Shown here: in pieces, positions 15,013-51,087 of the stretch
Layout of the letters: each line of letters starts with the position of its first letter
How positions within the stretch are numbered: position 1 is the stretch's first letter
Virus record (IMG/VR): IMGVR_UViG_3300046092_000062
Coordinates: 186,001 to 250,000 of that record
Reading direction: 5' to 3' (one strand)
Length of the DNA: 64,000 nt
Made by a program: the position numbers and the translations under genes
The notes under the pieces: generated by a model
Told to the model about the DNA's origin: nothing
The model's input: only the letters and a program-made list of their open reading frames with translations
The model's database searches: none

Positions 15013-15041
15013 TTGACAAGATATTGGAATAGTGCTACAAT
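15013..15041 (+). promoter_or_regulatory. sigma70-type promoter
   Basis: TTGACA-17-TACAAT. Confidence 0.75.
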
Positions 15042-15064
15042 AGCACATTACTAAAGGAACTATC

Positions 15065-15907: not shown

Positions 15908-15945
15908 CTCCTAGAGAGTTATCTTATTACATAAAGGAAATTAAA

Positions 15946-16500: not shown

Positions 16501-16509
16501 TCAAACCTG

Positions 16510-16555
16510 TTGACTTTAGTTAACACAGAGCCTATACTGCGGTATAGGCTTTTTT
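16510..16555 (+). terminator. terminator overlapping a promoter
   Basis: AGCCTATAC-TGCG-GTATAGGCT-T5; TTGACT(16510)-17-TATACT(16533). Confidence 0.75.
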
Positions 16556-16567
16556 ACGAGGTAAATT

Positions 16568-16948
16568 TTGGCATACATTTTAAATAATCACAAGCATACC
16601 GGCAACTTATTTGTTGGCACAGCAACTACAGCAGCTAATCCATATTCGGTTAGTGGGGCAAATGGATATACCAATACTACATGGACCACTGCCGCCAACC
16701 CAATGACTGTTACACAACAAGCAACTATCCAGCTAAATGGCGAAAAGGCAGACATTGTTATAAACGGCAAGAGTCTCAAGGATACGTTGGAGGCATTGGA
16801 ATCGAGGTTGGCCATGTTGAAACCTGATGTCTCACTCGAAACCGAATGGGCAGAACTAAAACGGTTAGGCGATGAATACCGTAAATTGGAACTAGAGATT
16901 AAGGAAAAGATGAAAACTTGGGACACCCTTAAGAACACCTCACTTTGA
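16568..16948 (+). CDS. hypothetical protein, C-terminal coiled coil
   Basis: TTG start after GAGG. Confidence 0.7.
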   Translation: MAYILNNHKHTGNLFVGTATTAANPYSVSGANGYTNTTWTTAANPMTVTQQATIQLNGEKADIVINGKSLKDTLEALESRLAMLKPDVSLETEWAELKRLGDEYRKLELEIKEKMKTWDTLKNTSL

Positions 16949-16973
16949 CACATAAAGGCATTTAGTGTATAAT
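16945..16973 (+). promoter_or_regulatory. consensus sigma70 promoter heading array II
   Basis: TTGACA-17-TATAAT. Confidence 0.85.
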
Positions 16974-16979
16974 AGTACT

Positions 16980-17162
16980 ATGAACTCTATCACAATCAAT
17001 GGTGCCGATAAGGCACTCGAAGCAGGCGGCTGGTGCAGAAAACAATTTGGTATTAAGGGATGGACAATAGACTTGAACAGTATGTTGGGCAACAATCCCA
17101 CGTATAGGTTTGATTTCTCTAGTCCCGCTGATGCTACACTATTTGCATTAAAATGGCGGTAA
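16980..17162 (+). CDS. LRW-family mini-protein II-1
   Basis: WCRKQFG; tail FSSPADATLFALKWR. Confidence 0.85.
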   Translation: MNSITINGADKALEAGGWCRKQFGIKGWTIDLNSMLGNNPTYRFDFSSPADATLFALKWR

Positions 17163-17410
17163 CTTTAGTCGTTCATGAATTTACACTAGGTGACGTAGAT
17201 GATCCCGAAATCTACGCAGCCGTGCCCTTGTATGAATGGCAATTGAGTGATGCCGGTAAATGGGTTATGGAAAATGCTATTGAAACTCCCCAGTGGGGCA
17301 GAATCAATGATCATCTCACGTACTCACTTCGTTACAGAGTAACTGCAAAGCTCAAAGATGAGGATGCAACCTTTTTCAAGTTAAAGTATGATCACACTAA
17401 CCGACGCTGA
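17153..17410 (+). CDS. LRW-family mini-protein II-2
   Basis: tail LKDEDATFFKLKY. Confidence 0.8.
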   Translation: MAVTLVVHEFTLGDVDDPEIYAAVPLYEWQLSDAGKWVMENAIETPQWGRINDHLTYSLRYRVTAKLKDEDATFFKLKYDHTNRR

Positions 17411-17615
17411 GTGGCGTAATATTAGAAATCAAATCAGAATTGAATACGCCGACAAGCCCAGTGTTTGGCTATTGCGCTCTGTAATGAAGCGTGAGTTAGG
17501 ATTTACTGACCGCCATCATCAAGTATACAGAGAACAAACAGGTTACATCACTACTGTCTACTTGGACTTCTTTAATGATGCAGCAGAAACAATGTTTAGA
17601 TTGAAGTACTTATAA
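17388..17615 (+). CDS. LRW-family mini-protein II-3
   Basis: tail FFNDAAETMFRLKYL. Confidence 0.8.
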   Translation: MITLTDAEWRNIRNQIRIEYADKPSVWLLRSVMKRELGFTDRHHQVYREQTGYITTVYLDFFNDAAETMFRLKYL

Positions 17616-17831
17616 TTGGAATTCATTGCACGTATACTGCCCAAGTTAATTGCTGGTGTCCTAAGCATTATGGATGCCAGTCGCTTGCGGGATAAAGTAT
17701 ACCAGCAACAACACGAGCATGAGTTGATGTGGACTGCACTAGATGATATCGCACGTATGCACCCAGATCATCCGTCAGGAAAAATGGCAAAGAAAACACT
17801 AGATGAAGTTACTACACGCTACGGTAGGTAG
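17616..17831 (+). CDS. hypothetical protein (non-LRW)
   Basis: 71-aa ORF abutting previous stop. Confidence 0.65.
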   Translation: MEFIARILPKLIAGVLSIMDASRLRDKVYQQQHEHELMWTALDDIARMHPDHPSGKMAKKTLDEVTTRYGR

Positions 17832-18219
17832 GTTTCAGGCATGGCGCCATGCACGTTACCTCAAAAAGAAGGGCTGGACCCAGCGCCAGTTTGACCTCAT
17901 CAACGATCCTGATTTTTGCGCACGTGGCAGCAGTATTCGTAAAGATGTCTATCGCGGCTATCCCTACTTAATCTCGTTTGACGACACAGTACCAATGGAA
18001 CGGCGATATGGTCAAGGATGGATCACCGTAGTTGATAATATGACAGCGTGGTGCGAAGCGAATGTTACAGGCAAATGGAGAGAAGATATCCTTGCAGTCG
18101 ACAAGAGTTGGGACGACGAATGGACGCAAGGGTGCATGGGCCTAAGCCACAACATTCTATTCTTTGCATTTAACAATGAGCAAGATGCAGTAATGTTTAG
18201 TCTATACTGGAGTGTGTAA
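17803..18219 (+). CDS. LRW-family protein II-4 with long N-terminal extension
   Basis: AWCEAN core; tail FNNEQDAVMFSLYWSV; start uncertain. Confidence 0.8.
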   Translation: MKLLHATVGRFQAWRHARYLKKKGWTQRQFDLINDPDFCARGSSIRKDVYRGYPYLISFDDTVPMERRYGQGWITVVDNMTAWCEANVTGKWREDILAVDKSWDDEWTQGCMGLSHNILFFAFNNEQDAVMFSLYWSV

Positions 18220-18437
18220 TGAACATCGAATTCAAACATCGCCCGGACCGATACTACGAGTGGGAAATGTACTACAGTCCACAGGGCCCCGAAATGGGCG
18301 AAGTATACGGTTGGTGCTGGGAAACATTCGGTCACCCAGGACTAGCATTAGGTAATGGAACTTGGGATAACCACGGCGGATGGATTAAGTTTCGCAGAGA
18401 AGAAGATATGACTATGTTTATGTTGAGGTGGAGCTAA
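18219..18437 (+). CDS. LRW-family mini-protein II-5
   Basis: WCWETFG; tail FRREEDMTMFMLRWS. Confidence 0.85.
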   Translation: MNIEFKHRPDRYYEWEMYYSPQGPEMGEVYGWCWETFGHPGLALGNGTWDNHGGWIKFRREEDMTMFMLRWS

Positions 18438-18703
18438 TGGAATTATTTTATGGTGGCGGCGGACGCAGTAACCCGGACTTTATACACAAGGTGCGGGTTA
18501 GCAAAAAACGTGCAGGTGATGTTAGTCCACTGATGAAGTGGTGCGACGATTACCCAACTGGTGATAAGGGCTACTTTAAACGCTACTACATCGATTGGCG
18601 TGGTGACACAAAGAGCTGGGATAGTGACTATGTTACATTCCAATTTGAATGGGAACAAGCTGCTATCATGTTTGCTCTAAGTTTTGCGGACAGCGTATGC
18701 TAA
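18437..18703 (+). CDS. LRW-family mini-protein II-6
   Basis: KWCDD; tail FEWEQAAIMFALSF. Confidence 0.8.
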   Translation: MELFYGGGGRSNPDFIHKVRVSKKRAGDVSPLMKWCDDYPTGDKGYFKRYYIDWRGDTKSWDSDYVTFQFEWEQAAIMFALSFADSVC

Positions 18704-18981
18704 CAACAGTAAGAATTTGGGTACTAGATCACAATGTTATCCCCGACCAATCCGATGTAGACTACTGCAAGAACAACGGCATACAACTAGACGCCCAGCA
18801 AGGTGAGCATCAGCGTATCGAAACTGGCAGCGGGCAGGTCTATCACTACCGCACCTCACCCGGGGTCATAAAGCTAACCACATTTGACGAGAAAAGCGAA
18901 TGTATGTTACAATTACGCTACGCAGGTAGAATCCATCTAATGCAACAAATTTACACCGAGTCTGTAACACATTCGTATTAA
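18697..18981 (+). CDS. divergent LRW-like protein II-7
   Basis: FDEKSECMLQLRY; similar to 2936. Confidence 0.65.
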   Translation: MLTTVRIWVLDHNVIPDQSDVDYCKNNGIQLDAQQGEHQRIETGSGQVYHYRTSPGVIKLTTFDEKSECMLQLRYAGRIHLMQQIYTESVTHSY

Positions 18982-19310
18982 TGAAAGTTCGTCTTAAAAA
19001 TGGCCGCATTGGAGAGCATCGCCTTAAGTGGGACAACAACCCAATGGGCATTGCGCCATTGCTAATAGGATCGGAGACTGTGGAATTGGATATCACTGAA
19101 CGAATTTACAACGGGCCCGACTGCTACCCGTGGCGCAAGACGTTTGCACTTTGGCCAGTTAAAACAATAGGTGGTAGCCGCATTTGGTTACGCACTGTTT
19201 ACAAACAACGATTCTGGGCAGTGTGGGGCAAAGGCTTTCACATGGAGCCCTGGGTTGAATATGCAACACTATTTGAGATTTTAAAACATGAACCTAAATC
19301 ATCTATCTGA
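18981..19310 (+). CDS. Trp-rich hypothetical protein (non-LRW)
   Basis: WRKTFALWPVKT.GG..IWL..VY. Confidence 0.75.
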   Translation: MKVRLKNGRIGEHRLKWDNNPMGIAPLLIGSETVELDITERIYNGPDCYPWRKTFALWPVKTIGGSRIWLRTVYKQRFWAVWGKGFHMEPWVEYATLFEILKHEPKSSI

Positions 19311-19764
19311 CGTAGAGCTGCTACGCTACTTGGATTTGACTAGCACTGATCCATTGGTTATTCGTTTGATCAACATGCTGTCTGCACCTAACGGTGGGCT
19401 TGTTGGTGATTTAGTGGAAGCAGGCATGGATCCTAACACATGGGTCTTTACAGACGATCACCAAGACTACTACCCCGGAGATTACATCACCCACTTGCAA
19501 AAGATGGTTGCCTACGCAGAAGATGACCGTGCGGTAGCCGAAATGGATTTAGCGGATGCTCGTGAAGAACTTGATAAGTTAAGTCGACGCACCGTTACAG
19601 AACTTCTAGTAGATGCGCAGCGGGCAATTGACTCTGCAAAATCCAATCACCTTTACGCAGTTAGAGAAGCTGAAAAAGCTCACGAAGTAATTGACAAGGT
19701 ACAAGCAGAGAATAGACATCTCAAAGAGCAATTGGGCATGTGGAATATTTTAGGGACAGAGTAA
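19288..19764 (+). CDS. coiled-coil hypothetical protein
   Basis: heptad-like C-terminal half. Confidence 0.75.
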   Translation: MNLNHLSDVELLRYLDLTSTDPLVIRLINMLSAPNGGLVGDLVEAGMDPNTWVFTDDHQDYYPGDYITHLQKMVAYAEDDRAVAEMDLADAREELDKLSRRTVTELLVDAQRAIDSAKSNHLYAVREAEKAHEVIDKVQAENRHLKEQLGMWNILGTE

Positions 19765-19765
19765 C

Positions 19766-20032
19766 ATGGACAACGTTATTCACAGCAACAAATATTTCCG
19801 ATTAACTAAATGGCGCCATCGCAAAAGCGACAAGGTGCATTATCGCGTTGAGATGACATACAGTTGGTTGAATCTGGACCAAGAAGCAGGGGAGAAAAGT
19901 TTTCCTGAGCAAGTTCGCGATGTAATCGACCCAACTCGTTGTCGTGCTGGGCAAGCTGGCAACCACTGGAAATACCGTAACTTAGAAGAAGCTACAAAAG
20001 CCTATACATTTTTAGTAATGAAATTCTCATGA
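19766..20032 (+). CDS. LRW-family mini-protein II-8 (divergent)
   Basis: tail YRNLEEATKAYTFLVMKFS. Confidence 0.7.
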   Translation: MDNVIHSNKYFRLTKWRHRKSDKVHYRVEMTYSWLNLDQEAGEKSFPEQVRDVIDPTRCRAGQAGNHWKYRNLEEATKAYTFLVMKFS

Positions 20033-20310
20033 GTTATAAACTTAAACTAGCACACAAGCATCACGATCAATTAGATCAAATTGAAGCATGGCTCAACGCT
20101 AACGTTGGCCCTGGTAGCAAACGACATGCAAACAACACCTGGCTCGGTGCCGAAGATTGGTACTGCTATGAAGAAGCACTAGTTCCGGGCAGCGAGGAAG
20201 AGGAAGAAGAGTATTACGACAACGATGACAATCTTGAAGATATTTCAGATTTGATCTTTGTATTCCGCCGCGAAAGCGATCTGTTAATGTTTAGTTTGAA
20301 ATGGGCATAG
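20029..20310 (+). CDS. LRW-family mini-protein II-9 with acidic insertion
   Basis: SEEEEEEYYDNDDNLED; tail FRRESDLLMFSLKWA; TAG stop. Confidence 0.85.
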   Translation: MSYKLKLAHKHHDQLDQIEAWLNANVGPGSKRHANNTWLGAEDWYCYEEALVPGSEEEEEEYYDNDDNLEDISDLIFVFRRESDLLMFSLKWA

Positions 20311-20311
20311 C

Positions 20312-20668
20312 ATGTCTAGTCCTTTTAAACTCACAGATCTCCCCAACAACACTTGGTCAGTAACATGGACCGAGAATAACTTTGCACATAATGCTAAACA
20401 GCGAGACAAGTTAGTAGATATTCTGTTTAGCGAAATTGGATGCCGCGACGTTGGCCTAGGCATTAAACTAAACAATGGCGAACTAGAAACACTGTGGATT
20501 GGTGAAAAAGAGTATTTTCAACGGTCCGACATAGCCCACGGATGGGAAGACATGTATGTTGTTCGTGGTGTTGTGTTCATTCACGAACACGAAGCTAGGG
20601 AGTTTCATCAATTGATGGAAAGTCGATTGGCTTGGTACTACTTAAAGCAAGGTGCAGCAGTTGCTTGA
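20312..20668 (+). CDS. divergent LRW-like protein II-10
   Basis: FIHEHEAREF followed by a helical extension. Confidence 0.65.
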   Translation: MSSPFKLTDLPNNTWSVTWTENNFAHNAKQRDKLVDILFSEIGCRDVGLGIKLNNGELETLWIGEKEYFQRSDIAHGWEDMYVVRGVVFIHEHEAREFHQLMESRLAWYYLKQGAAVA

Positions 20669-20879
20669 AATTCCATACCCAACCCTAATGAATGGCAGTC
20701 GCACGTTCTCTATGGAAACTCTACAAAAGTGGCTTGACGCACACTTTCCTCAAGAACGTTCCTGCATTGTCCGTGTTGCTATTGTTAACAAAGGGCCTGG
20801 GAGGTACGGCGACGAACGATGGGCGATTCGTTTTTATCGGGATGAAGATGCAACACTGTTTGGATTGTTATGGCAGTAA
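20652..20879 (+). CDS. LRW-family mini-protein II-11
   Basis: tail FYRDEDATLFGLLWQ; start GTG 20652 or ATG 20688. Confidence 0.8.
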   Translation: MQQLLEIPYPTLMNGSRTFSMETLQKWLDAHFPQERSCIVRVAIVNKGPGRYGDERWAIRFYRDEDATLFGLLWQ

Positions 20880-21127
20880 CCTATAAAACTAATCCGGGAT
20901 TCCCAGGTGTTAATTTTCCCGTGTTGCACCGTGTTGTCTATGCACACACCATCGATGGTGTCCCAGCACAATGGCAAATCAGCTACAAGGATTATATAGT
21001 CAATGAATGGCTTAAAGCAAACACACGCCATCCTTACTACCACAGTCCCGGGTATCTTCGTGAAAAGTTCATTGAGTTTGAATGTGATGAAGAAGCAGTG
21101 CTATTCGCACTAAAGTGGGCAAAGTAA
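20870..21127 (+). CDS. LRW-family mini-protein II-12
   Basis: tail FECDEEAVLFALKWAK. Confidence 0.85.
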   Translation: MAVTYKTNPGFPGVNFPVLHRVVYAHTIDGVPAQWQISYKDYIVNEWLKANTRHPYYHSPGYLREKFIEFECDEEAVLFALKWAK

Positions 21128-21357
21128 TGTACAGCAAGACTCACCGATTTTTTAAATTCAAACACGTTCCCAAGGACTTTATATGGGGCAGTGAGGAAAT
21201 TGACCTGTGCCGCCTGCACATTGGTGACAACCGTATCACGATGCCGCTTGTGGACCGCGAATGGTTTAGTTCGCCCGATGGTGTATGGATTCGACATGAT
21301 TGTCTGGATAACGAAATCATAACTTGGTTTGCACTGAAAGCAAGCAATGAAGTTTGA
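21127..21357 (+). CDS. LRW-family mini-protein II-13
   Basis: tail LDNEIITWFALKA. Confidence 0.75.
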   Translation: MYSKTHRFFKFKHVPKDFIWGSEEIDLCRLHIGDNRITMPLVDREWFSSPDGVWIRHDCLDNEIITWFALKASNEV

Positions 21358-21607
21358 ACTGCTAGAAGGGCGCATACACGGAGCCCGTTACTACACAGTT
21401 AGACCAGACTTTAATTGGTGGCTTTCGGGCAGCTTAAACAATACAAATGCCACCTGGCGTGATATGTTAGAATGGTGTGTAGAAGTATTCGGTCCTAGCG
21501 CAGAAATGGGTGTGTGGGAACCCGGTGCTCGTTGGTATGCTAACAATGCAAAGTTTTGGTTTCGTAATGCAGAAGATAGGACAGCGTTTTTGCTGAGATG
21601 GTCATGA
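21347..21607 (+). CDS. LRW-family mini-protein II-14
   Basis: EWCVEVFGP; tail FRNAEDRTAFLLRWS. Confidence 0.85.
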   Translation: MKFELLEGRIHGARYYTVRPDFNWWLSGSLNNTNATWRDMLEWCVEVFGPSAEMGVWEPGARWYANNAKFWFRNAEDRTAFLLRWS

Positions 21608-21837
21608 AACCAGACCTAGTCCAATTTTACTGCGAACGAGATCCCTATTACGCTAAATCACGTGAGTACTACATGATGAACGTAAATCATTACGAAACTC
21701 CTTATTACCTTTGGATGATACAGGAATATCGCACTGTGCTGTTAAACAAACAGGGTAGCTGGAGCGACAGGGCTGAACAGCATTGGGGCTTTATTAATGA
21801 ATCGGATAGAACAATTTTTATGTTGAGATGGTCATGA
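21604..21837 (+). CDS. LRW-family mini-protein II-15
   Basis: tail FINESDRTIFMLRWS. Confidence 0.85.
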   Translation: MKPDLVQFYCERDPYYAKSREYYMMNVNHYETPYYLWMIQEYRTVLLNKQGSWSDRAEQHWGFINESDRTIFMLRWS

Positions 21838-22064
21838 CAACTACTGTTGAATTTGGTAAAGATCGTTATCACTTACAGGGTGAAATGGAAGAATGGTGCG
21901 AGCACAATATTGGGTCTAATCCTCGTTATAGCAACCACGTTTGGTCCAAGCCAGTTGAGTGGGAAGGGTTAGGCACATGGTGCATGGCTAGTGCGTTTGG
22001 CACAACATTTTTCTACTTTAAACATCGCAAAGATGCAACCTTCTTTGCATTGAAATGGAAATAA
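21834..22064 (+). CDS. LRW-family mini-protein II-16
   Basis: EWCEHNIG; tail FKHRKDATFFALKWK. Confidence 0.85.
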   Translation: MTTTVEFGKDRYHLQGEMEEWCEHNIGSNPRYSNHVWSKPVEWEGLGTWCMASAFGTTFFYFKHRKDATFFALKWK

Positions 22065-22065
22065 T

Positions 22066-22428
22066 ATGGATGATCGGAATCTTTGGCACCTGCTATGTGA
22101 TTGGGTAAAATTTGGTAAGTTTATAGAATGGAAAGAATGGTTTTACTGGACCATTGTGCCTGGCACTAGCATTGGGGTCATTTGGCCAAATGGCCCAATT
22201 TCTCTGGGTTGTGATCCTGATGGCGAAGAGGTAATCGTCGACTCCGCTGATCCAAACGATCACTATCGCCCATGGTTAGAAGAGCATGTCGGGCGTCAGG
22301 GCATTGATTGGGAATGGAGAATGGGAACTTTTGGATTTTGGACAGATGAAATAGATACTCTAGACATTAAGTTTCGAGTGGGAAAGACAAAGTATGCTAC
22401 AATAGCAGCATTGATGTGGGGCCAATGA
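22066..22428 (+). CDS. LRW-family protein II-17, extended N-terminus
   Basis: WLEEHVG core; tail KYATIAALMWGQ. Confidence 0.75.
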   Translation: MDDRNLWHLLCDWVKFGKFIEWKEWFYWTIVPGTSIGVIWPNGPISLGCDPDGEEVIVDSADPNDHYRPWLEEHVGRQGIDWEWRMGTFGFWTDEIDTLDIKFRVGKTKYATIAALMWGQ

Positions 22429-22628
22429 GAACCAAAACTACAAGAGAACTATATCCGTACCATGTGCGCTTTAAGCGTACAGGAGATTGGTATGGCAATG
22501 ATGGTACTTGGTATCAAATTAGCACATGGCTTCGAGAACACTTTGGGCAGAATTGGGAATATCTTGACAGTATGTTTATGTTCTCTAAGGAAGAACACAA
22601 AATGCTTTTTATAATGAGATGGCTATGA
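22425..22628 (+). CDS. LRW-family mini-protein II-18
   Basis: WLREHFG; tail FSKEEHKMLFIMRWL. Confidence 0.85.
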   Translation: MRTKTTRELYPYHVRFKRTGDWYGNDGTWYQISTWLREHFGQNWEYLDSMFMFSKEEHKMLFIMRWL

Positions 22629-23044
22629 CAAAACGCAACACCGTAGTAATGGATATCGAAACCACAACAGCAGTAATGCCGCGTGGGTCTTCTTCTGTTT
22701 TTCAGGGCATCACAGGTGGAATACATCCTGGAGAAATGATGATTTATGCCGGGGGCAGACAAACTGGCAAGTCCACACTGTCTTACCATATATTAAAGAG
22801 CAGATACTACGAAATGGGCATCAAGGAACAAATCCAGACGTTGGATACGTTTACACTAGATGGTGCTACATGGTACACTGTACACTGTCGTCCTTCGACT
22901 ATTAGTGGGTGGGTGCAAGAGCAAGACTCCGATATGTGGTGCCGACACTACAACACAGGCGCACTGCGAGTTGAATACCCCACGTTTAACAACTACAACA
23001 TACACGAAGAACTGTATTCAATGTTATTGTTGAAATGGTCATGA
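22625..23044 (+). CDS. LRW-family protein II-19 with DnaB-like Walker A fragment
   Basis: GGIHPGEMMIYAGGRQTGKST; tail IHEELYSMLLLKWS. Confidence 0.8.
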   Translation: MTKRNTVVMDIETTTAVMPRGSSSVFQGITGGIHPGEMMIYAGGRQTGKSTLSYHILKSRYYEMGIKEQIQTLDTFTLDGATWYTVHCRPSTISGWVQEQDSDMWCRHYNTGALRVEYPTFNNYNIHEELYSMLLLKWS

Positions 23045-23406
23045 AAATCTTAAAACAAACTGTAGCAGCTAAGACTTGCACCCTCAAAGCCAATTGGACT
23101 ATTGATCGCTCAGCAGACAATAGCTTTACGATCGGTGATGATACGTGGCAAGAGGTTGGGGCAGCACTACGAAAAGAGATTGATGAAGAAATTGTTAACA
23201 ATATTAGAAGGCATGAGCTTATGTTAAAAGGATGGGTCAAGGCCCCGTTTACTAGCGACAAGTTTGCTACACCAGGCAACCACCAGATAGCAGAAGTTAC
23301 TGCATGGATTCACATGAACACCACGGCGCAATATCAAATCTTCGGCCGAGAGTTCTGGTTCTCAAGCAAGGAAGACTTAACACTGTTTGTACTGAGGTGG
23401 GCATGA
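23041..23406 (+). CDS. LRW-family protein II-20 with major-capsid (gp23-like) fragment
   Basis: ILKQTVAAKT..LKANWT...AAL.KEIDEEIV; tail FSSKEDLTLFVLRWA. Confidence 0.8.
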   Translation: MKILKQTVAAKTCTLKANWTIDRSADNSFTIGDDTWQEVGAALRKEIDEEIVNNIRRHELMLKGWVKAPFTSDKFATPGNHQIAEVTAWIHMNTTAQYQIFGREFWFSSKEDLTLFVLRWA

Positions 23407-23630
23407 GCTATACACTGTACCCCGACGAAGACATTCTAAAGAAGCAACGATATATCGTTAAGTACAGAGGGAGCCTGTATGGGCACCGCGACGAGATGCT
23501 TGCCTGGTGTGTAGAACAGTTTGGTCCACATTCACATGCCTACAAAAATCCACGATGGAGTGAAAACTGGGACCGATTCTGCTTTAAGAATGAAAGCGAC
23601 ATGATGCTGTTTATGTTGAGATGGTCATGA
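23403..23630 (+). CDS. LRW-family mini-protein II-21
   Basis: WCVEQFGP; tail FKNESDMMLFMLRWS. Confidence 0.85.
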   Translation: MSYTLYPDEDILKKQRYIVKYRGSLYGHRDEMLAWCVEQFGPHSHAYKNPRWSENWDRFCFKNESDMMLFMLRWS

Positions 23631-23893
23631 CAGATACAGATAAATTAGAGTGGTCAGATATTTGCCGCCATGAGCATAAGTGCAAGGGTGATGAATTGTT
23701 ATATCACACTGTGCCTAGCTATAGTGTATATGTCAGGGCATCTAAATGGTTGCGGGAAGAGCGTGGGTACAAGTTTATCAGCGTAGAGGGTGAAACGGAA
23801 GAACATAGTGCTGGTTGGCGTTACACGGGTAGGTATACTTTTAAGTTCTTGTGCGAGCAAGAGTATATGTGGTTTAAGTTGAGGTGGTCGTGA
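23627..23893 (+). CDS. LRW-family mini-protein II-22 (close paralogue of 8389)
   Basis: tail RYTGRYTFKFLCEQEYMWFKLRWS. Confidence 0.85.
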   Translation: MTDTDKLEWSDICRHEHKCKGDELLYHTVPSYSVYVRASKWLREERGYKFISVEGETEEHSAGWRYTGRYTFKFLCEQEYMWFKLRWS

Positions 23894-24180
23894 TGAGTAG
23901 ACCAGGTTTTAATTCACAAGAGTGGTTTCGGGCCAAGCATGACCCAAAACATGATATGGTACATGGCGATAGACTGTATTACGTTGAGCCAGGTTGCGAA
24001 TACGGGTTCAAAGAAGATGACGGATATGTGTGGAATCGCATAAGCTGTAGCTATTGGTTCGGGGACTGGATTGAAGAAAATGGCGGTGAGGGACGTTGGC
24101 GAGCATACGGCGGCAGGCATCGTGCTATCTACATTGTGCGCGAAGACCTACTAGCGTTTATTAAGTTAAAGTGGCTATGA
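23893..24180 (+). CDS. LRW-family mini-protein II-23
   Basis: DWIEENG; tail VREDLLAFIKLKWL. Confidence 0.8.
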   Translation: MSRPGFNSQEWFRAKHDPKHDMVHGDRLYYVEPGCEYGFKEDDGYVWNRISCSYWFGDWIEENGGEGRWRAYGGRHRAIYIVREDLLAFIKLKWL

Positions 24181-38427: not shown

Positions 38428-38599
38428 ACAAATTAAAGCATTAGCAGTCCGTGCCAAGATTCAAATGTGTAGTCACGAACGCCTACAAGAGTTTGCTGAA
38501 TTGGTTATCGATGAGTGCAAAGCAGCACTAGAGAAAACAGACCCAACAACATCACAACGCGGCATTGAAGCCATTAACAGAGAGCTAGGAATCAAATGA
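38420..38599 (+). CDS. FGVE-family small protein
   Basis: MNEQIKALA...EFAELVIDEC...ELGIK. Confidence 0.75.
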   Translation: MNEQIKALAVRAKIQMCSHERLQEFAELVIDECKAALEKTDPTTSQRGIEAINRELGIK

Positions 38600-39513
38600 A
38601 AGAGCTATGGACTGAAAAGTATCGACCAAAGACTGTAGGCGACTATGTGTTTACTGATGCAAGTCAACGTAAACAAATTGAGTCTTGGATTCGCGATAAG
38701 ACTATCCCGCATCTGCTACTAAGCGGCAGTCCGGGCACAGGCAAAACAACTCTTGCTAAAGTTCTTATCAATGAACTGGGCATTGAAGACTACGATGTAC
38801 TACAGATCAACGCAAGTCGTGACAACGGCGTGGACTTTATTAAAAGCAAGGTCGAAGGCTTTGTGCAAACAATGCCATTTGGTCGCTTTAAAGTTGTGCT
38901 AATGGACGAAGCTGATTACTTGTCGCATAACGCACAGGCTATCATGCGCGGACTGTTAGAAACATACGCAAGCCAAGCACGTTTTATCTTTACATGTAAC
39001 AAGCCACACAAGATCATGGATGCACTGCATTCACGTTGCCAAGGCTTTCACATTGACAAAACAGATGAAACAGAGTTCACTGCCCGTGTTGCAACTATTC
39101 TTGTAACCGAAGGCGTCGAGTTTGACCTTGACACACTAGACAGCTATTGCAAAGCCACTTATCCAGACTTGCGTAAGTGCTTGAACTTGCTGCAAGCTAA
39201 CAGTACCGAAGGTACTCTAGACAAGCCCGGAGAAAATGATCGTGGCGTTAGAGACTGGAAACTGGATGCAGTTGAACTAATGAAGAGCGGTCGTATTCGC
39301 GAAGCTCGTCAAGCAATTATCAACAATGGCGACAACCACGAAGAGATCTTCCGTTGGATGTACGACAACTTGAACATTTGGTCTAAGACCGAATCTGGAC
39401 AAGACGAGGCAATCATTGTCATTCGCAAGGGACTTGTAAACCACAGCATGGTTGCAGATCCCGAAATCAACCTATCGGCTACACTAGTCGAATTAACACA
39501 AATTACATCATGA
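38596..39513 (+). CDS. clamp loader subunit (RFC small / T4 gp44-like)
   Basis: LWTEKYRP, GSPGTGKTT, INAS, LMDEAD, SRC, DLR. Confidence 0.92.
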   Translation: MKELWTEKYRPKTVGDYVFTDASQRKQIESWIRDKTIPHLLLSGSPGTGKTTLAKVLINELGIEDYDVLQINASRDNGVDFIKSKVEGFVQTMPFGRFKVVLMDEADYLSHNAQAIMRGLLETYASQARFIFTCNKPHKIMDALHSRCQGFHIDKTDETEFTARVATILVTEGVEFDLDTLDSYCKATYPDLRKCLNLLQANSTEGTLDKPGENDRGVRDWKLDAVELMKSGRIREARQAIINNGDNHEEIFRWMYDNLNIWSKTESGQDEAIIVIRKGLVNHSMVADPEINLSATLVELTQITS

Positions 39514-39911
39514 GCAATAAAGACATCTATCTAGTAGCATATTATGGCATGAAGCCAAAGCCAGGAGTCCGCACCAACGTTAAAGGTTGGATGGATAATA
39601 AAGACAACATTCGCTACGACGAAAAAGTTGAAATCACACGCGGTTTAAAGAACAGCGCACACACTGCAAAGATTGTGCTTAATTTCTCTAACAAGACTGT
39701 TACACGTAACGGCTTTAACGAAAATCGTGACTTCAAAGAACTGTTTAAGTATTTCTTTGCAGGATATCATCAGTACATGACTACAGTTATGAAACAGTTG
39801 GATCCAGAGTTCATGGACATTATTGTCTCAGAGCTAGAAGCCGAAATGGAAGCAGCAGACGCGGCAGCAGCGGCCGAGATTGAAAATGCCCAAGCAGTTC
39901 CAGCTGAGTGA
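39510..39911 (+). CDS. hypothetical protein
   Basis: coupled to clamp loader. Confidence 0.75.
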   Translation: MSNKDIYLVAYYGMKPKPGVRTNVKGWMDNKDNIRYDEKVEITRGLKNSAHTAKIVLNFSNKTVTRNGFNENRDFKELFKYFFAGYHQYMTTVMKQLDPEFMDIIVSELEAEMEAADAAAAAEIENAQAVPAE

Positions 39912-40212
39912 TGCAGGCGATAGGGGTTGGTTTGTAGGGCAATTTGATAAGGCTGTTTTTAAAACAGATATCTTAGAAGCTGCCTTCCAAACTAACTACC
40001 AGGGCGAGACTAGTGTGGCACATTACCACAAAATCGCCACGGAAATCAATCTAATTACGGCAGGCAAGGTTCAAATTAACGGGGAAATCTACACCGCAGG
40101 CATGGGAATTATATTCTATCCCAACGAAGTGTGTCAGTGCAGCTACTTAGAAGATACCACTACTATGGTCATCAAGGTTCCGGGACCACTTAACGATAAA
40201 TATCCTATATGA
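39880..40212 (+). CDS. cupin-like protein
   Basis: GWFVG.F, H.HKIATE, G.V..NG. Confidence 0.6.
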   Translation: MKMPKQFQLSDAGDRGWFVGQFDKAVFKTDILEAAFQTNYQGETSVAHYHKIATEINLITAGKVQINGEIYTAGMGIIFYPNEVCQCSYLEDTTTMVIKVPGPLNDKYPI

Positions 40213-40454
40213 ACCCAGCAATGCTTAGACTAATGAAGGCAAAGAAGAAGCGTCCAGTGGACCCTAATGCTCCGCCTCGTCCCAACTTATTGAGCCACGA
40301 AAAAGTCCTTAAAGACACCAAGTTAACTATGGACCAAATGGCTGCTAAAATTAATCGATTAGAACAACGACTAGAAGCTACTGAATCTAAATTACGCTAC
40401 CAAACACAATATCTATCTCAATTACACGCTAGCCTTGCTAGCAAGAAAAAGTAA
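40209..40454 (+). CDS. coiled-coil hypothetical protein
   Basis: heptad pattern. Confidence 0.7.
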   Translation: MNPAMLRLMKAKKKRPVDPNAPPRPNLLSHEKVLKDTKLTMDQMAAKINRLEQRLEATESKLRYQTQYLSQLHASLASKKK

Positions 40455-40920
40455 CATTATCGTAACATAAGGTTGGCAGGCCGGTTAAAATTCTGCTGGG
40501 TAAGCATCTGATGTGTGTGCCGATGCCCAATTCTGTCATTACGGACGGACTTCAATTCTCTACCCTTGTGATGCAAGGATGCCTTAAAACGATGCCCCTC
40601 TGCGGTAATAACGTTTGAATTGTCGGATACAGGTTGAGTGTAGCGTGAGCTAACTTAGATCCATTACGTCCATTGCACATTGACACCGAGGTGCATTAAA
40701 AATCGTAGTAGGTAGGGTAAGGTACAGAGCCCAGAGACGTGGAATCCAAAACACCTATTGTCGTTTAAACGAGAGCAACTCGGATGAAATCCTTTTGACA
40801 TCCATTTATTGGGTGTCATTCTCACTCCACAATCTGGATGAATATCTCATACATCACTTCTTACTACTTCAAACAAATGCGTTAAGCGATAGCTTATAAG
40901 CAGATGTACGCAGTACATCT
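40455..40920 (+). ncRNA. candidate large structured non-coding RNA
   Basis: about 460 nt without a credible ORF in a gene-dense genome, with many nested helices; strand not established. Confidence 0.55.
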
Positions 40921-40925
40921 TTCAT

Positions 40926-40981
40926 GTAATACAAAGTATTACATAATTTTGGTTGACCCATAAAGATTTCCTTGTTATAAT
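40926..40981 (+). promoter_or_regulatory. early promoter with palindromic box
   Basis: GTAATAC-AAA-GTATTAC; TTGACC(40953)-17-TATAAT(40976). Confidence 0.85.
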
Positions 40982-41010
40982 AAACGCATAGCAAATAATT
41001 AAGGGTTACC

Positions 41011-41184
41011 ATGAACAAATCTGATGCTGTGAGAATCTTGTTTAAACTTGCTAAACTCAAACAGGTTTGTCGTTATACCAGCATGAATATAGTGCATGTT
41101 GGGGAAGTCTGGGTTGAAGCATGGTCTAGCCCTGCAGATCTAAACACTATGCAATTAAACAATTGGACTTACCAAGTTCTCTAA
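41011..41184 (+). CDS. hypothetical protein (57 aa, not in track)
   Basis: between two early promoters; MNKSDAVRILFKL... Confidence 0.55.
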   Translation: MNKSDAVRILFKLAKLKQVCRYTSMNIVHVGEVWVEAWSSPADLNTMQLNNWTYQVL

Positions 41185-41191
41185 CCGAAAT

Positions 41192-41220
41192 TTGACCTTA
41201 AATGGTTTTGGTGCTATAAT
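41192..41220 (+). promoter_or_regulatory. early promoter
   Basis: TTGACC-17-TATAAT with TGGTTTTGGTGC spacer shared with 9030 and 9363. Confidence 0.85.
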
Positions 41221-41251
41221 ACTAGCATAGTAAGCAAAACAGGAGTTTGAT

Positions 41252-41638
41252 ATGGCCCGCGAAACAGCAGCACAGCGTAATGCACGATTTGATGCAGAAC
41301 GTGAAGCACAACGCCAACAAGAAATGGCAGCTTATCCTTCTCGTTTAATGTCGGCTCTTGAGCGTGTGAATAATCAATACGATTGGCAACTCACTGTTGT
41401 GGATGCCGTGTTCCTTGTGACTAATCCTCACAGTCGCGCCTATCACAATAAAGAATATCGTATGAGCTATGCCTACGATACAGTTTCTCAAGAGTCCTTA
41501 GAGGATCTTGAATACATGCTAACAGATTTGGAAGAAGCTCAAGCAGAAGCCAAGCGCCAATCGGCAGTCAAAGCAGAAGCTCAACGCAAAGTGCGCGAGT
41601 TGCTGAATGACGAAGAACGTGCATTGTTGGGGCTCTAA
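41252..41638 (+). CDS. hypothetical protein
   Basis: AGGAG SD. Confidence 0.75.
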   Translation: MARETAAQRNARFDAEREAQRQQEMAAYPSRLMSALERVNNQYDWQLTVVDAVFLVTNPHSRAYHNKEYRMSYAYDTVSQESLEDLEYMLTDLEEAQAEAKRQSAVKAEAQRKVRELLNDEERALLGL

Positions 41639-41642
41639 TAAC

Positions 41643-42281
41643 ATGGCAATCAACGTACTAGACACTCTTGCGCTGGCAGTAGCAGCATATCGCATCAATG
41701 GCAATCAGGTTGTCAATGCTACTACACTTGCGCAACCAGTTACCAATGCCGCTATGGTCAAAAGCCATATGCTGCATTGTACTAGCATTGAAGTGCTTAA
41801 CGAAGATCGCGTTCGCGCACAAGAGATTAAAGATGCTATTGTGCAGCAGGTTTTGTTGGCTCGCCTGACAGGTAAGGAATTAGGCAATTTTGTTGAGCGT
41901 GTGGGTTTGATTGTAGAGAAAGAATCTACAGGCCGCGGCGATGTTGGCATCATTGTTTGGATTCCCAAAATCTATGCAGACCTTCAAGCTGAGCAGAACC
42001 AAGCGCATGAGCTGACTATTAACGGGTACAGCAGCAAGTATATTGGCCGCATTGGTGACAAAGTTGAGCTGGAGTTCACTACAGTAATCAAGCGTTGGAA
42101 TAAGACTTATCTCTGCTATCGCTACACAGGACACGACAACAACGGCAATCTAGTGGGATTTTTCTGTAAGCATGAATATCCCCCAACCGTTAAATTGCGG
42201 GCCAAAGTCAAGGCACAAGAAGAAAGCAAGTTTAGTGGTGGTAAGATCACGTATCTAAACTACACAAAGGAAATAAAATGA
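41643..42281 (+). CDS. hypothetical protein, possible C-terminal OB fold
   Basis: SKYIGRIGDK.. followed by beta-rich tail. Confidence 0.7.
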   Translation: MAINVLDTLALAVAAYRINGNQVVNATTLAQPVTNAAMVKSHMLHCTSIEVLNEDRVRAQEIKDAIVQQVLLARLTGKELGNFVERVGLIVEKESTGRGDVGIIVWIPKIYADLQAEQNQAHELTINGYSSKYIGRIGDKVELEFTTVIKRWNKTYLCYRYTGHDNNGNLVGFFCKHEYPPTVKLRAKVKAQEESKFSGGKITYLNYTKEIK

Positions 42282-42496
42282 TGGCCGTATTTGGTTGGAT
42301 TTGTTTAGTGGTGTTTATGCTGTCAGCAACCGCGTCATGGTTTATTATGTGGATTTGCCACAGTGGACCTTGGACAATTGGTGGCGCAGAAAATTCGTGG
42401 GCTAGCCGTATTTCGATTAACGTTGCTGGTATTGCAGTTGCAGGACTGTGGTACTTGGTCTTTACTGAAGCTCCTTTTACATTGGCATTAAAATGA
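42278..42496 (+). CDS. membrane protein
   Basis: two TM segments. Confidence 0.7.
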   Translation: MMAVFGWICLVVFMLSATASWFIMWICHSGPWTIGGAENSWASRISINVAGIAVAGLWYLVFTEAPFTLALK

Positions 42497-42714
42497 TTCA
42501 CTTTGATTTTATTGTGGAAGATGTTGACGCTGAAAATCTCATGTGGGCTATCCGTGAATCAGCATTGCGTAATGATGAAGCCATTATGGACTACGAGGCT
42601 CGAACAGACTTAACACAAGAACAGAAAGATTCGTATATTGACTGGCTCAAAGCCAATAAAGCATATATGCTGGGCTTGATTGAAAAAATGACCAACACAC
42701 GGGTGGAAGAATGA
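42493..42714 (+). CDS. hypothetical protein
   Basis: ATGA coupled. Confidence 0.7.
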   Translation: MIHFDFIVEDVDAENLMWAIRESALRNDEAIMDYEARTDLTQEQKDSYIDWLKANKAYMLGLIEKMTNTRVEE

Positions 42715-43118
42715 TTCCAGAAGAACACAAAACAGCACTTATTACCAATGGCTTGCATTTTATGAGGGCCATTACGGAAGCCTACGGCGCAGACAAAGGA
42801 CTAGAATTGTGGGAACAGGTTACAAGTGTGCTAGATCCCGATGTTAAAGGACAAATATTCTTTGCAATGATCACTGGTCAATACAATGATCGTATCCTGT
42901 TAAAAGGCCTTACACACTATGCGACTAACAATGCAGTGGCCTGCATCAAAGAGATTCGCACGTGGACGGGCTTGGGTCTTAAAGACAGCAAAGACATTTA
43001 CGACCGCTTGCGTAATCGCACGTATGAAAGCAGTCCTAGCCAAGAGTTCATTAAGGTCGGGCCAGAGCAGTACAGTCAAGCAGTTGCGGGTCTTCGTAAC
43101 GCAGGATTTACAATATGA
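42711..43118 (+). CDS. protein with ribosomal L7/L12 C-terminal-like motif
   Basis: AVACIKEIRTWTGLGLKDSKDIYD resembles L7/L12 K..VIK.VR..TGLGLKEAK.LVE. Confidence 0.7.
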   Translation: MIPEEHKTALITNGLHFMRAITEAYGADKGLELWEQVTSVLDPDVKGQIFFAMITGQYNDRILLKGLTHYATNNAVACIKEIRTWTGLGLKDSKDIYDRLRNRTYESSPSQEFIKVGPEQYSQAVAGLRNAGFTI

Positions 43119-49654: not shown

Positions 49655-50413
49655 TCATACCTCCTTATAGATCTTCAATATCTCGAGAACAGCAGGATGT
49701 CGCATAATATCCTTGCCTGTGAATTCCACTCCGCTGACGTATTTGCAATTACGGTAATCATCAACTAGACGTTTAAAGTCTAGTAAGCCGTTATCTGCTT
49801 CTTTACGGTCTGCTTGGCGTGTGTCACCTGTAACTACAATTTTGGAACCTTCACCGAGGCGTGTTAGCAGCATCTTCATCTGCGATGGTGTGGCGTTTTG
49901 CATTTCGTCTGCAATAATCCAACTATTTTTAAAGGTACGTCCTCTCATATATGCTAGTGGAGAGATCTCAATTTGTTTTTCTTCTAGCATTTTTGTGACT
50001 TCAATTGGTCTATAGTATTCTTCGATGTAATCTAAAATAGGTCTAGTCCATGGTGCCATTTTTGCATTAAGGTCGCCTGGTAGGAACCCGTGCTGCTCAT
50101 CATCAACTCCGACGGCTGGTCGAGTGATAACGATCTTGGAACATTCGCCAGCTCTAAATGCTTTTAGTGCCGCTAATACGGCTAGCATTGTTTTACCAGT
50201 ACCTGCTGGGCCAGTGGCGAATAGAATAATTCTTTGGGGATCTGTTAATAGATCAATGTAGTCTTCTTGTGCTAAAGACTTTGGGGAAAGGTTAATTGGT
50301 CTTTGTTTTTGGGGACGATATGTATCGATGTTAATGGTGTTATCGTTGCGATTGTTTGATTGGGTGATTGCTGGTTGAGCATTTGATGCTCGGCCTTTAC
50401 GCTGTTTAGACAA
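49655..50413 (-). CDS. phoH: PhoH family protein
   Basis: GPAGTGKT, GFLPG, PLAYMRGRTF, DEMQN, TGD..Q, RHP; likely TTG start at 50413 after AAGGAGG. Confidence 0.93.
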   Translation of the reverse strand: MSKQRKGRASNAQPAITQSNNRNDNTINIDTYRPQKQRPINLSPKSLAQEDYIDLLTDPQRIILFATGPAGTGKTMLAVLAALKAFRAGECSKIVITRPAVGVDDEQHGFLPGDLNAKMAPWTRPILDYIEEYYRPIEVTKMLEEKQIEISPLAYMRGRTFKNSWIIADEMQNATPSQMKMLLTRLGEGSKIVVTGDTRQADRKEADNGLLDFKRLVDDYRNCKYVSGVEFTGKDIMRHPAVLEILKIYKEV

Positions 50414-50547
50414 ATGTGCCTCCTTGGGGTGCGTGAATTTTTCCATTTTACTGTGGATCAGTAAAACAGTCTGTCCACGCAAATATTTACGGAGGTTGCC
50501 CCAGACCAATTAACAGGGTTTATAACTTTTGGTGACCGGCATAAGTA

Positions 50548-51087
50548 TTAAGCTGTGCGCGATACTTTCCACTCTGCATATAAGCGATTCTGCGTATCCC
50601 ATCTACATTCTACTAAGCGGCAATTAAACAAGTCTGCTAACCGCACATGCTCCTCAACACTCCATGGATAGAAATCTATGTCGTTACATTCTGTGTTACC
50701 ATGATCTTTGCGCCCAGGATTGCAACGCCAATAAATCCTAGCTTCGCTTTTAAGCAACCCAAGCACTATAGCAATTTGATCTTCGATGTTTTTCCTATCG
50801 CCAAAGTTAATTGACCCCAAACAAAACGCAACATCAAACGGTGCAGGGGTGTGGTACTCTTCTAGTGTGCATTTAACATCAGCTTGGTCAAATGCTGGAT
50901 CAATACCCACTAGATCGGGGATGTGTCCTTTAAACGGATTCATTCCGCAGCCCACATCAAGTACACGCTCACCTGGCTTAATTTTGTCCACTAAGGCCCA
51001 CCCAGTGTAAGTATATTGATCAAGAGTGCGATCGCGCTTTGCCCATACGTTGGCAAAATAGTCATTAAGGTAAGGTTGATTAATCAT
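50548..51087 (-). CDS. class I SAM-dependent methyltransferase
   Basis: RVLDVGCG motif I, GIDP, FD...LGSINF. Confidence 0.75.
   Translation of the reverse strand: MINQPYLNDYFANVWAKRDRTLDQYTYTGWALVDKIKPGERVLDVGCGMNPFKGHIPDLVGIDPAFDQADVKCTLEEYHTPAPFDVAFCLGSINFGDRKNIEDQIAIVLGLLKSEARIYWRCNPGRKDHGNTECNDIDFYPWSVEEHVRLADLFNCRLVECRWDTQNRLYAEWKVSRTA

Follow-up and report, generated by a model that had tools for sequence, protein, structure and literature searches.

A candidate new class of large non-coding RNA with a predicted pseudoknotted fold in uncultured jumbo phages

Introduction

What does a gene-sized stretch without any plausible open reading frame encode in the genome of a jumbo phage? We asked this for a locus in a 64,000-nt stretch of viral DNA (positions 186,001 to 250,000 of the IMG/VR record IMGVR_UViG_3300046092_000062, here called the window), in which positions 40455-41010 carry no plausible ORF on the gene strand. 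An earlier note made from the sequence alone had described the region as rich in helices and the longest non-coding stretch in the window, and had proposed an undescribed structured RNA, an intron remnant or an origin. It is in fact the second-longest same-strand gap, but the longer one (50016-50646) holds minus-strand genes. Our comparative data support the first of these proposals and show that the locus is one copy of a conserved RNA element of roughly 390 nt, which looks like a new class of large phage RNA.

Results

A family of homologous loci

Direct similarity searches gave little. Blastn in distant mode against 50,697 phage records found nothing, and blastn, nhmmer and tblastx against 80 syntenic clamp-loader loci found only a near-identical strain. 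Homologues of the downstream genes p128 and p57 did not carry the element either. In contrast, short probes were successful: a 22-mer from the region hit 10 other IMG/VR contigs exactly, a 20-mer hit 33 metagenome contigs and one MAG contig, and an independent flanking pattern added 31 more true members. In total, we collected 77 viral or metagenomic loci with 59 distinct full-length sequences. As both probes used to collect the family lie in or beside the core described below, the invariance of this core is partly a selection effect and more distant members would have been missed. There is one copy per carrier genome, and the five related large genomes tested (four of them at least 98% complete) lack the element, so it is accessory.

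Architecture of the element

The locus has the following features, all on the + strand:

40209-40454 (+), gene p81, the last gene of the clamp-loader operon (g44 at 38596-39513, g62-like, p110, p81), ending 5 nt before the RNA
40460-40848 (+), conserved structured RNA element, the whole family-conserved span of about 390 nt
40460-40468 (+), conserved 5' leader (TCGTAACAT; family consensus RGYGYRACA), with the likely 5' end of the RNA at about 40459-40461
40471-40498 (+), 5' H-type pseudoknot, in which GGT (40471-73) pairs with GCC (40480-82) in the loop of hairpin H1 (TGGCAG 40474-79 / CTGCTG 40493-98)
40499-40528 (+), hairpin H2 with conserved loop CTGATGTGTG
40532-40549 (+), hairpin H3 (TCTGTC/GACGGA)
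40553-40622 (+), multi-branch helix H4 (CAATTC/GAATTG), enclosing the invariant CTACC, hairpin H4a (CCTTG 40564-68 / CAAGG 40574-78), the invariant GGATGCC (40577-83), H4b (AAACG 40587-91 / CGTTT 40612-16) and the inner hairpin H4c
40634-40657 (+), optional hairpin H5 capped by a GNRA tetraloop (GTGA here)
40660-40743 (+), long-range helix H6 (5' strand 40660-70, 3' strand 40736-43), enclosing H7 and the core
40673-40696 (+), hairpin H7 with conserved loop TGACACCGAGG (40681-91)
40696-40735 (+), near-invariant 40-nt core (TTAAAAATCGT, AGTAGGT, N, then GGGTAAGGTACAGAGCCCAGA)
40707-40759 (+), core pseudoknot helix, in which AGTAGGT (40707-13) pairs with ACCTATT (40753-59), crossing H6
40776-40788 (+), box 1 (CAACTC + GGATGA)
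40797-40817 (+), 3' hairpin H9 (GACATCC / GGGTGTC), the 3' strand almost invariant
40830-40842 (+), box 2 (CAATCT + GGATGA), with family conservation ending at about 40848
40849-40952 (+), variable tail with two terminator-like hairpins (40902-20 and 40924-44) followed by AATTTTGG, the probable 3' end of the transcript
40953-40981 (+), sigma70-type promoter (TTGACC-17-TATAAT) of the next operon, not part of the RNA

Covariation supports the fold

Single-sequence folding was not significantly better than that of shuffled sequences (z = -1.43 on the + strand and 0.06 on the - strand). By the criterion of the earlier note, which took folding no better than shuffles as a refutation, the finding would have failed, but this test is weak, and the evidence for more than chance comes from comparative data. 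RNAalifold predicts 65 pairs, 42 of them with compensatory changes. In the central domain, 99.3% of cells are paired against 79.5% in shuffles and 31-45% in slid controls, with 212 double-change cells against 50.8 +/- 7.7. In the 5' domain, the figures are 98.3% against 81.9%, with 151 against 42.6 double-change cells. Covariance models of the 5' and central domains score 164.7 and 152.8 bits, respectively, in the window copy.

Most of the pairings listed in the earlier note are real and supported by covariation across the 59 distinct sequences. H3 is 96.3% paired against 64.3% in shuffles, with 96 double-change cells, and all four modelled pairs covary. For H4, RNAalifold finds double changes in 7 of 7 pairs; however, the 5'-domain covariance model did not include H4, so that this helix rests on RNAalifold alone. 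H4a is 100% paired with 47 double-change cells, and the only near-identical strain differs here by two exactly compensatory pairs among its 14 differences. TAGGT/ACCTA (40709/40753) is one arm of a pseudoknot, and GACATCCA/TGGGTGTC (40797) corresponds to H9, with 8 predicted pairs, 3 of them with changes on both sides and the rest switching between G-U, A-U and G-C. In contrast, GGAT/ATCC (40782) is not conserved, and the AGATGTAC/GTACATCT hairpin (40902) lies outside the conserved element and looks like one of two terminator hairpins.

The stem of the 5' pseudoknot changes on both sides across the family (GGU/GCC, GGC/GCC, GGCG/CGCC and AGCG/CGCU, plus GGUG/CACC read from the alignment), and H1 covaries from AU to GC. 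The base pairs of H2 covary (GC/UA/UG), but its inner stem shifts register between clades and only the outer pairs were counted. The stem of H5 covaries with GUGA, GCGA, GCAA, GUAA or GAGA loops, and the hairpin is missing in about 14 family members. In H6, 7 of 8 pairs show changes on both sides and over 98% of cells are paired, whereas in H7 all 5 stem pairs covary and 100% of cells are paired. The loop 6-mer of H7 is complementary to the invariant GGTGTC at 40812-17 in 57 of 59 sequences, with GGCACC/GGUGCC and AACACC/GGUGUU variants, which may be a tertiary or alternative pairing.

The core is invariant or nearly so in the 59 distinct sequences, including 31 found with a probe that lies outside the 20-mer, and only position 40714 is freely variable. 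The core pseudoknot helix is 97.1% paired, against a shuffle maximum of 92.3% and at most 55% in slid controls, and 4 of 7 pairs covary, for example AGAGAGU/ACUCUCU in three members. The variable hexamer of box 1 is identical to that of box 2 in 51 of 51 sequences, across five types (AGCAAA, AGAUGA, AGCGAA, AACAAA, GGAUGA), and no internal complementary partner for these boxes was found. The secondary structure of the 3' domain beyond H9 could not be settled.

Transcription signals and RNA libraries

Many homologues have motifs of their own sigma70-type extended -10 promoter and a downstream terminator-like hairpin. The -10 box ends 16-25 nt before the AAGG motif, which places the inferred start about 9-10 nt upstream of AAGG. 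This promoter class is strongly strand-biased in these genomes (30-35 forward against 0-1 reverse). The window copy lacks a strong promoter of its own. Its tail hairpins do not meet a strict terminator scan, and other family members carry unrelated hairpins, some with T-runs, at the same relative place.

The element is present in contigs of two metatranscriptome libraries, here called X14 and X24, although assembled contigs cannot give ends, strand or abundance and may contain DNA. One X14 contig runs continuously across 40186-40679 and thus spans p81 and the first 220 nt of the RNA, whereas in X24 the contigs cover a diverged copy of the element but not the flanks. In X14, the 3' half of the element (40680-40837) is almost uncovered (depth 1.56 against 29), which may reflect assembly breaks at the shared core, processing, or termination inside the element. 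The terminator and promoter gap 40838-41004 has no coverage, although the genes on both sides do.

Search for a protein partner

No linked protein partner was found. Several neighbours recur, namely a NUDIX/DUF6934-like protein in 22 of 59 distinct loci, a CHASE2-cyclase in 17, a phrog_18771 small protein in 17 and an amidoligase protein in 15, but none is universal and the genome of the window lacks the cyclase. A whole-genome comparison of three genomes with the RNA against two without it gave 7 candidates, of which the three best (a radical SAM protein, a 160-aa protein and an 88-aa protein) all occur in genomes without the RNA.

Comparison with known RNAs

Rfam, ARAGORN and the literature give no match. 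A scan of the whole window with Rfam 15 (4227 models) found only a tRNA at 1515-1586, and a permissive scan of 40300-41100 up to E = 10 gave one noise hit on the minus strand (SpF14, 25.8 bits against a threshold of 100), while no family reached even E = 0.1 on the + strand. ARAGORN, including its permuted-gene search, found no tRNA or tmRNA in 39500-42000.

Like GOLLD and ROOL (RF01998, RF03087), the element is a large, intricately folded, phage-borne RNA first seen in environmental sequence, without known partner protein or function and with a patchy, accessory distribution. However, there is no sequence or covariance-model similarity to these RNAs, for which RNA-only multimers have been reported (bioRxiv 10.1101/2024.12.08.627333). 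It measures about 390 nt against roughly 580-800 nt, is carried by Gram-negative-type jumbo phages related to PA5oct, and was not seen next to tRNA genes here. The models for OLE, raiA and HEARO gave no match either, and no IscB/TnpB-like or OLE-associated genes lie nearby. PA5oct, the closest cultured relative (clamp loader 57% identical), expresses the ORF-free, + strand ncRNA001-004 of a few hundred nt, of which ncRNA002 is 451 nt and highly transcribed (PMC7318152). We found no match to the core at up to 3 mismatches anywhere in PA5oct and no nhmmer hit at the ncRNA002 locus, and conserved structure has not been reported for the PA5oct RNAs.

With bacterial RNase P RNA, the element shares a similar size, long-range helices, pseudoknots, GNRA-capped peripheral hairpins that come and go, and short conserved single-stranded blocks, but there is no hit to RF00010 or RF00011 and, judged by eye, the P4 signature blocks and their order appear to be absent. 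Two crossing helices that enclose a conserved core, with peripheral hairpins and a GNRA loop, are reminiscent of the P3-P7 pseudoknot of group I introns. Yet a 22-nt invariant segment sits between the two crossing strands, where group I introns have almost none, and there is no signal for RF00028 or RF00029. It is also worth noting that the G-variant of the core shares 15 identical nt (UAGUAGGUGGGGUAA) with E. coli 16S rRNA helix 11 (249-263), and that in both RNAs UAGGU pairs with a downstream ACCUA (3-6 of 1000 shuffles score as high). Since position 40714 is free to vary (A, G, U or C), the enclosed loop is 40 nt against 11 nt, and the A-variant of the window scores within the shuffle range (12 of 200), we regard this as a lead rather than a finding.

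Discussion

Taken together, we consider 40460-40848 most likely a single-copy gene for a large, compactly folded non-coding RNA, with a probability of about 0.8. With its tail, the transcript probably runs to about 40950. The family was previously uncatalogued and is scattered among uncultured, mostly freshwater, jumbo phages. The fold has about ten helices, a 5' H-type pseudoknot and a second pseudoknot that clamps the core, and the RNA is read from the + strand. We infer that in most phages host RNA polymerase transcribes it early from a sigma70-type extended -10 promoter, of the kind these phages use for many genes, and that a hairpin terminator ends the transcript. In the window, it would instead be made as the 3' extension of the clamp-loader operon transcript and probably be trimmed. 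From context only, we further infer that the RNA works in trans and not on its neighbouring genes, that the core forms a binding or catalytic pocket, and that this pocket acts on a conserved host component, as no phage protein was found to co-occur with the RNA and its gene neighbourhood changes from phage to phage. The two identically varying boxes may be specificity elements for such a target.

A role in cis, either as 3' UTR stabiliser or terminator module of the upstream operon or as leader or riboswitch of the downstream gene, is unlikely, although a role as a 3' UTR element is not excluded. In about 55 of 70 loci a same-strand ORF ends 8-90 nt upstream, and in the window the element is contiguous with p81 in an RNA-library contig and lacks a strong promoter. 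However, the neighbouring genes differ widely between loci (clamp-loader operon, NUDIX, UvdE, CHASE2-cyclase, desaturase), in more than 10 loci the upstream gene is on the other strand and the element has its own promoter, and downstream genes are unrelated and often on the opposite strand or behind a terminator and their own promoter. Moreover, such a fold is far more than a stabiliser needs. A highly divergent or permuted member of a known large RNA class (RNase P RNA, tmRNA, a group I or II intron, GOLLD, ROOL or HEARO) is similarly doubtful in spite of the ribozyme-like size, pseudoknots, GNRA loop and core, as the searches above gave no match and the order of conserved blocks and helices does not seem to fit RNase P or group I, although this comparison was not modelled. 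An intron remnant is not supported, because p81 is complete and of the same length as its homologues, and the element sits between complete, unrelated genes at different loci in different phages.

Even less likely is a DNA-level element such as a replication origin, packaging site or recombination hotspot. The element does lie next to replication genes in this window, at a junction that is an insertion hotspot in relatives, and 40800-41100 is AT-rich. Nevertheless, pairs switch freely between G-C, A-U and G-U on the + strand, which would be A-C mismatches on the other strand, pseudoknots and long-range helices are conserved, homologues carry their own promoter and terminator motifs, and both the varying location and the absence from five related large genomes speak against this reading. 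Finally, a decayed or unusual protein-coding gene is very improbable. One frame across the core is stop-free for at least 60 codons in 34 of 59 members, and some members have open frames of 58-118 codons, but the spacing between invariant blocks is 33, 34 or 35 nt, and 94-99 nt for another pair, so no frame is conserved. In the window copy, this frame has no start codon for 45 codons, substitutions are compensatory for pairing, and tblastx finds nothing in relatives.

In this context, a more speculative and rather unlikely possibility is that the RNA is a new natural ribozyme or an RNA-only machine. Its pseudoknot-clamped core would be an active or binding site, and its twin boxes would be programmable specificity elements that read a host RNA, for example a tRNA anticodon or another short sequence. 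Jumbo phages would then carry an RNA-based tool for host takeover or counter-defence.

Large, highly structured RNAs with near-invariant cores are rare, and the known ones include some of biology's central machines (ribosome, RNase P, self-splicing introns) as well as unsolved puzzles (OLE, GOLLD, ROOL, raiA). Ornate phage RNAs of unknown function have precedents; the family described here is new, but its mechanism is not known to be. A compact RNA with two pseudoknots and a core conserved across sequences that have otherwise drifted to about 50-60% column identity, for which no dedicated protein partner was found, is a strong candidate for a new functional RNA class. It also shows that jumbo phages exchange RNA genes as accessory cargo, alongside their auxiliary protein genes.

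Genomic context of the element

The IMG/VR virus record from which the window is taken (positions 186001-250000) has 320,767 bp, is estimated to be 92% complete and represents a jumbo phage with almost all genes on the + strand. Its nearest cultured relative is Pseudomonas phage PA5oct, whose clamp loader is 57% identical in protein sequence. The element lies between two units, and positions 40455-41010 hold no credible ORF:

38596-39513, + strand: gp44-like ATPase of a clamp-loader operon that further comprises a gp62-like gene, p110 and p81
40209-40454, + strand: p81, the last gene of this operon
40953-40981, + strand: strong sigma70-type promoter (TTGACC-17-TATAAT), which drives the small genes p57 and p128

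Searches of this region alone gave little. Rfam 15 finds nothing here at gathering thresholds, or at E up to 10 on the + strand, and ARAGORN finds no tRNA or tmRNA. The minimum free energy of the 466-nt stretch is only 1.4 sd better than dinucleotide shuffles on the + strand and no better on the - strand, and the INPHARED phage collection has no similar DNA. Of 80 loci from IMG/VR that encode a related clamp loader (63-100% identity), only one other strain shares the stretch, which is present there on two contigs (L010 and L011) at 97.5% identity. In the other relatives, p81 is followed either directly (about 90 nt) by the p224 homologue or by about 1 kb of unrelated sequence. The junction between p81 and p224 (40455-41606 here) is therefore an insertion hotspot, which in this genome holds the RNA gene plus p57 and p128, while a 93%-identical p128 occurs elsewhere without the RNA. 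The 73-aa gene at 42493-42714 is absent from the near-identical strain and from a contig of the RNA library X14, which joins 42491 directly to 42710. The following 135-aa protein (42711-43118) has a stretch resembling the ribosomal protein L7/L12 C-terminal domain, although the Pfam score (E = 2.9e-5, 24.8 bits) is just under the 25.9-bit cut-off. Further upstream, at 4800-24000, at least 20 small tandem genes share a 53-nt 3' block (e.g. 6006-6058, 8546-8598, 23841-23893) encoding a C-terminal ...F..E.D...MF.LRW motif, and each ends in an ATGA stop/start overlap; they form a large paralogous family of small proteins.

Collection of the family

Two observations pointed beyond this single locus. 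The near-identical strain differs at only 14 positions in 556, four of which convert the hairpin CCTTG/CAAGG (40564-78) to CCCAG/CTGGG, i.e. two exactly compensatory pairs. In addition, diverged contigs in a public RNA run (X24) and a DNA run (X3) matched only about 40696-40740, with flanks unlike the window, which indicated a strongly conserved core shared by other phages.

A 22-mer from that core occurs exactly in 10 further IMG/VR contigs, whose flanks align over about 390 nt. A 20-mer scan added 33 metagenome contigs and, as the only hit in 185,579 prokaryote species genomes, one 6.1-kb contig binned with a Polynucleobacter MAG (JBBAKF010000115.1), which is probably a mis-binned phage contig but hints at a possible host group. 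Since these probes might only recover core-identical copies, we also scanned IMG/VR with a pattern lying beside the 20-mer. This returned 56 stretches, namely the 12 already known, 13 chance matches and 31 new true members, and in the new members the core differs at exactly one position, window 40714, which can be A, G, T or C. Altogether, 77 loci carry the element, of which 71 are full length and 59 are distinct sequences, although collection of the family depended on probes in or next to the core. The loci lie on contigs of up to 354 kb. The runs holding the window's sequence are mainly freshwater metagenomes, with some wastewater, and a few metagenome contigs carrying the element are marine.

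Predicted structure and absence of coding potential

RNAalifold predicted 69 pairs on 12 sequences, 27 of them with compensatory double changes, and 65 pairs on 34 sequences, 42 of them with double changes. Covariance models of the central domain (R1) and the 5' domain (R2) re-aligned 59 and 58 copies, respectively. In the central domain 99.3% of cells are paired, compared with 79.5 +/- 0.6% in shuffles and 31-45% in slid controls, with 212 double-change cells against 50.8 +/- 7.7 in shuffles. In the 5' domain 98.3% of cells are paired, compared with 81.9% in shuffles and 34-51% in slid controls, with 151 double-change cells against 42.6 in shuffles. In window coordinates, on the + strand, the fold runs as follows:

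40460-68: short conserved leader
40471-73: GGU, which pairs with GCC in the loop of hairpin H1 to form an H-type pseudoknot; family variants are GGC/GCC, GGCG/CGCC and AGCG/CGCU, and GGUG/CACC by inspection of the alignment
Hairpins H2 and H3
40553-40622: branched helix H4 with three inner hairpins and the invariant blocks CTACC and GGATGCC, resting on RNAalifold rather than on a model-based alignment
Optional GNRA-capped hairpin H5
40660-70 with 40736-43: long-range helix H6, enclosing hairpin H7 with the conserved loop TGACACCGAGG
40696-40735: the 40-nt core
40707-13 with 40753-59: second pseudoknot, AGTAGGT with ACCTATT across H6
40797-40817: hairpin H9 in a 3' domain whose overall fold is unresolved
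40776-88 and 40830-42: two boxes

The second pseudoknot is 97.1% paired, against a shuffle maximum of 92.3% and at most 55% in slid controls, and coordinated variants include AGAGAGU/ACUCUCU. Most of the pairings proposed in the earlier note correspond to these helices, with the exception of GGAT/ATCC, which is not conserved, and the hairpin at 40902, which is part of the variable tail.

Many pairs alternate between G-C, A-U and G-U, which would be mismatches on the opposite strand, so that the RNA is read from the + strand. Distances between invariant blocks vary by single nucleotides (33, 34 or 35 nt in one case and 94-99 nt in another), and no reading frame can span them. The one frame that is often open across the core has no start codon in the window copy.

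Transcription

In many loci, including some where the upstream gene points the other way, a sigma70-type promoter with an extended -10 box ends 16-25 nt before the AAGG motif, with typical forms being TTGTGA or TTGACC, 17 nt, then TGTATACT. This puts the 5' end of the RNA about 9-10 nt upstream of AAGG, at about 40459-61 here. A subset of family members carries 3-4 repeats of TAGGCA or TAGGCT, spaced about 10 nt apart, between the promoter and the conserved 5' leader. This promoter class is common and strongly strand-biased in these genomes (30-35 forward against 0-1 reverse). Within the window a repeated sigma70-type module (TTGACCCATAATGATTTTGGTGCTATAAT and variants) is found at 3996, 9030, 9363, 28026, 40953, 41192 and 44362, and the looser motif TTGAC[CA]-N16-18-TATAAT occurs 35 times forward and once in reverse in the whole genome, with the same strand bias in related genomes. 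The RNA is therefore probably made by host RNA polymerase, like the many other genes of these phages with such promoters. Each copy is followed within about 50-100 nt by unrelated hairpins, some with T-runs, which in the window are at 40902-20 and 40924-44, followed by AATTTTGG.

The window copy, however, has only a weak candidate promoter (TTGCTA-17-TATCGT). In the metatranscriptome run X14 a single contig runs from p81 into the element (40186-40679), whereas the terminator and promoter gap 40838-41004 has no coverage, although genes on both sides do. This fits read-through from the operon and also argues against simple DNA contamination. However, the RNA evidence is from contigs only, which cannot show ends or strand, and the 3' half of the element is nearly uncovered in that run, with assembly breaks at the shared core being one possibility.

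Distribution and neighbouring genes

The window's genome has exactly one copy of the element, and five other carrier genomes have one copy each. Five large relatives, whose clamp loaders are 65-81% identical to the window's, lack it; four of these are 98-100% complete and one is 87% complete. PA5oct lacks it as well, and its four RNA-seq-defined ncRNAs (PMC7318152) are unrelated.

Neighbouring genes vary and include the clamp-loader operon, NUDIX, UvdE, CHASE2-cyclase, fatty-acid desaturase, DUF4337 and an amidoligase protein. Some recur in subsets, but none is universal. For instance, a 683-692-aa CHASE2-domain adenylate/guanylate cyclase (2322-4373 of the family locus L097 and homologues in 17 distinct family loci) often lies next to the RNA gene, sometimes upstream and sometimes downstream, but the window's genome has none. 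A comparison of three whole genomes with the RNA and two without it gave seven candidate co-occurring proteins, the three best of which all turned up in genomes without the RNA. So the RNA is an accessory, horizontally shuffled gene with no dedicated phage protein that we could find.

Comparison with known RNAs and possible function

The element resembles the "ornate" large phage RNAs GOLLD and ROOL in size class, phage carriage, patchiness and lack of a partner, but it is not a member of those families, nor of RNase P, tmRNA, group I or II introns, HEARO, OLE or raiA, as the defining models do not match and the gene context is wrong for introns; for RNase P and group I the architecture was compared with the general features of these families and not by a computed structural alignment. 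No description of the element was found in the literature that could be searched, with a small chance that it has been described elsewhere. We rate it as a new RNA class, with the caveat that the broader kind, a large phage RNA of unknown function, has precedents. The G-variant of the core (40705-40719) shares 15 consecutive identical nt with E. coli 16S rRNA 249-263 (helix 11), and only 3-6 of 1000 shuffles score as high, but the window's A-variant is not significant.

Two observations may bear on specificity. The variable hexamers of the two boxes are identical to each other in all 51 sequences where both could be read and occur in five types (AGCAAA, AGAUGA, AGCGAA, AACAAA, GGAUGA), while no complementary partner exists inside the RNA. 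Although unexplained, this concerted identity rather than complementarity suggests that both boxes read the same external partner. Moreover, the invariant GGGUGUC strand of H9 is also complementary to the H7 loop in 57 of 59 sequences, with coordinated variants, and alternative or tertiary pairing is therefore possible.

Given that this is a real RNA gene, a binder or decoy of a host macromolecule is the leading reading, with a rough probability of 45%. A ribozyme appears considerably less likely, an RNA-only assembly like ROOL or GOLLD slightly less likely still, and a cis-acting element improbable, with other functions making up the remainder. The element combines a conserved, strand-specific and pseudoknotted fold with an invariant core, a single copy per genome and an accessory distribution, whereas its mode of action is inferred: the RNA would act in trans, the core, clamped by the two crossing helices, would be the functional site for binding or catalysis, and its target would be a conserved host component rather than a phage protein.
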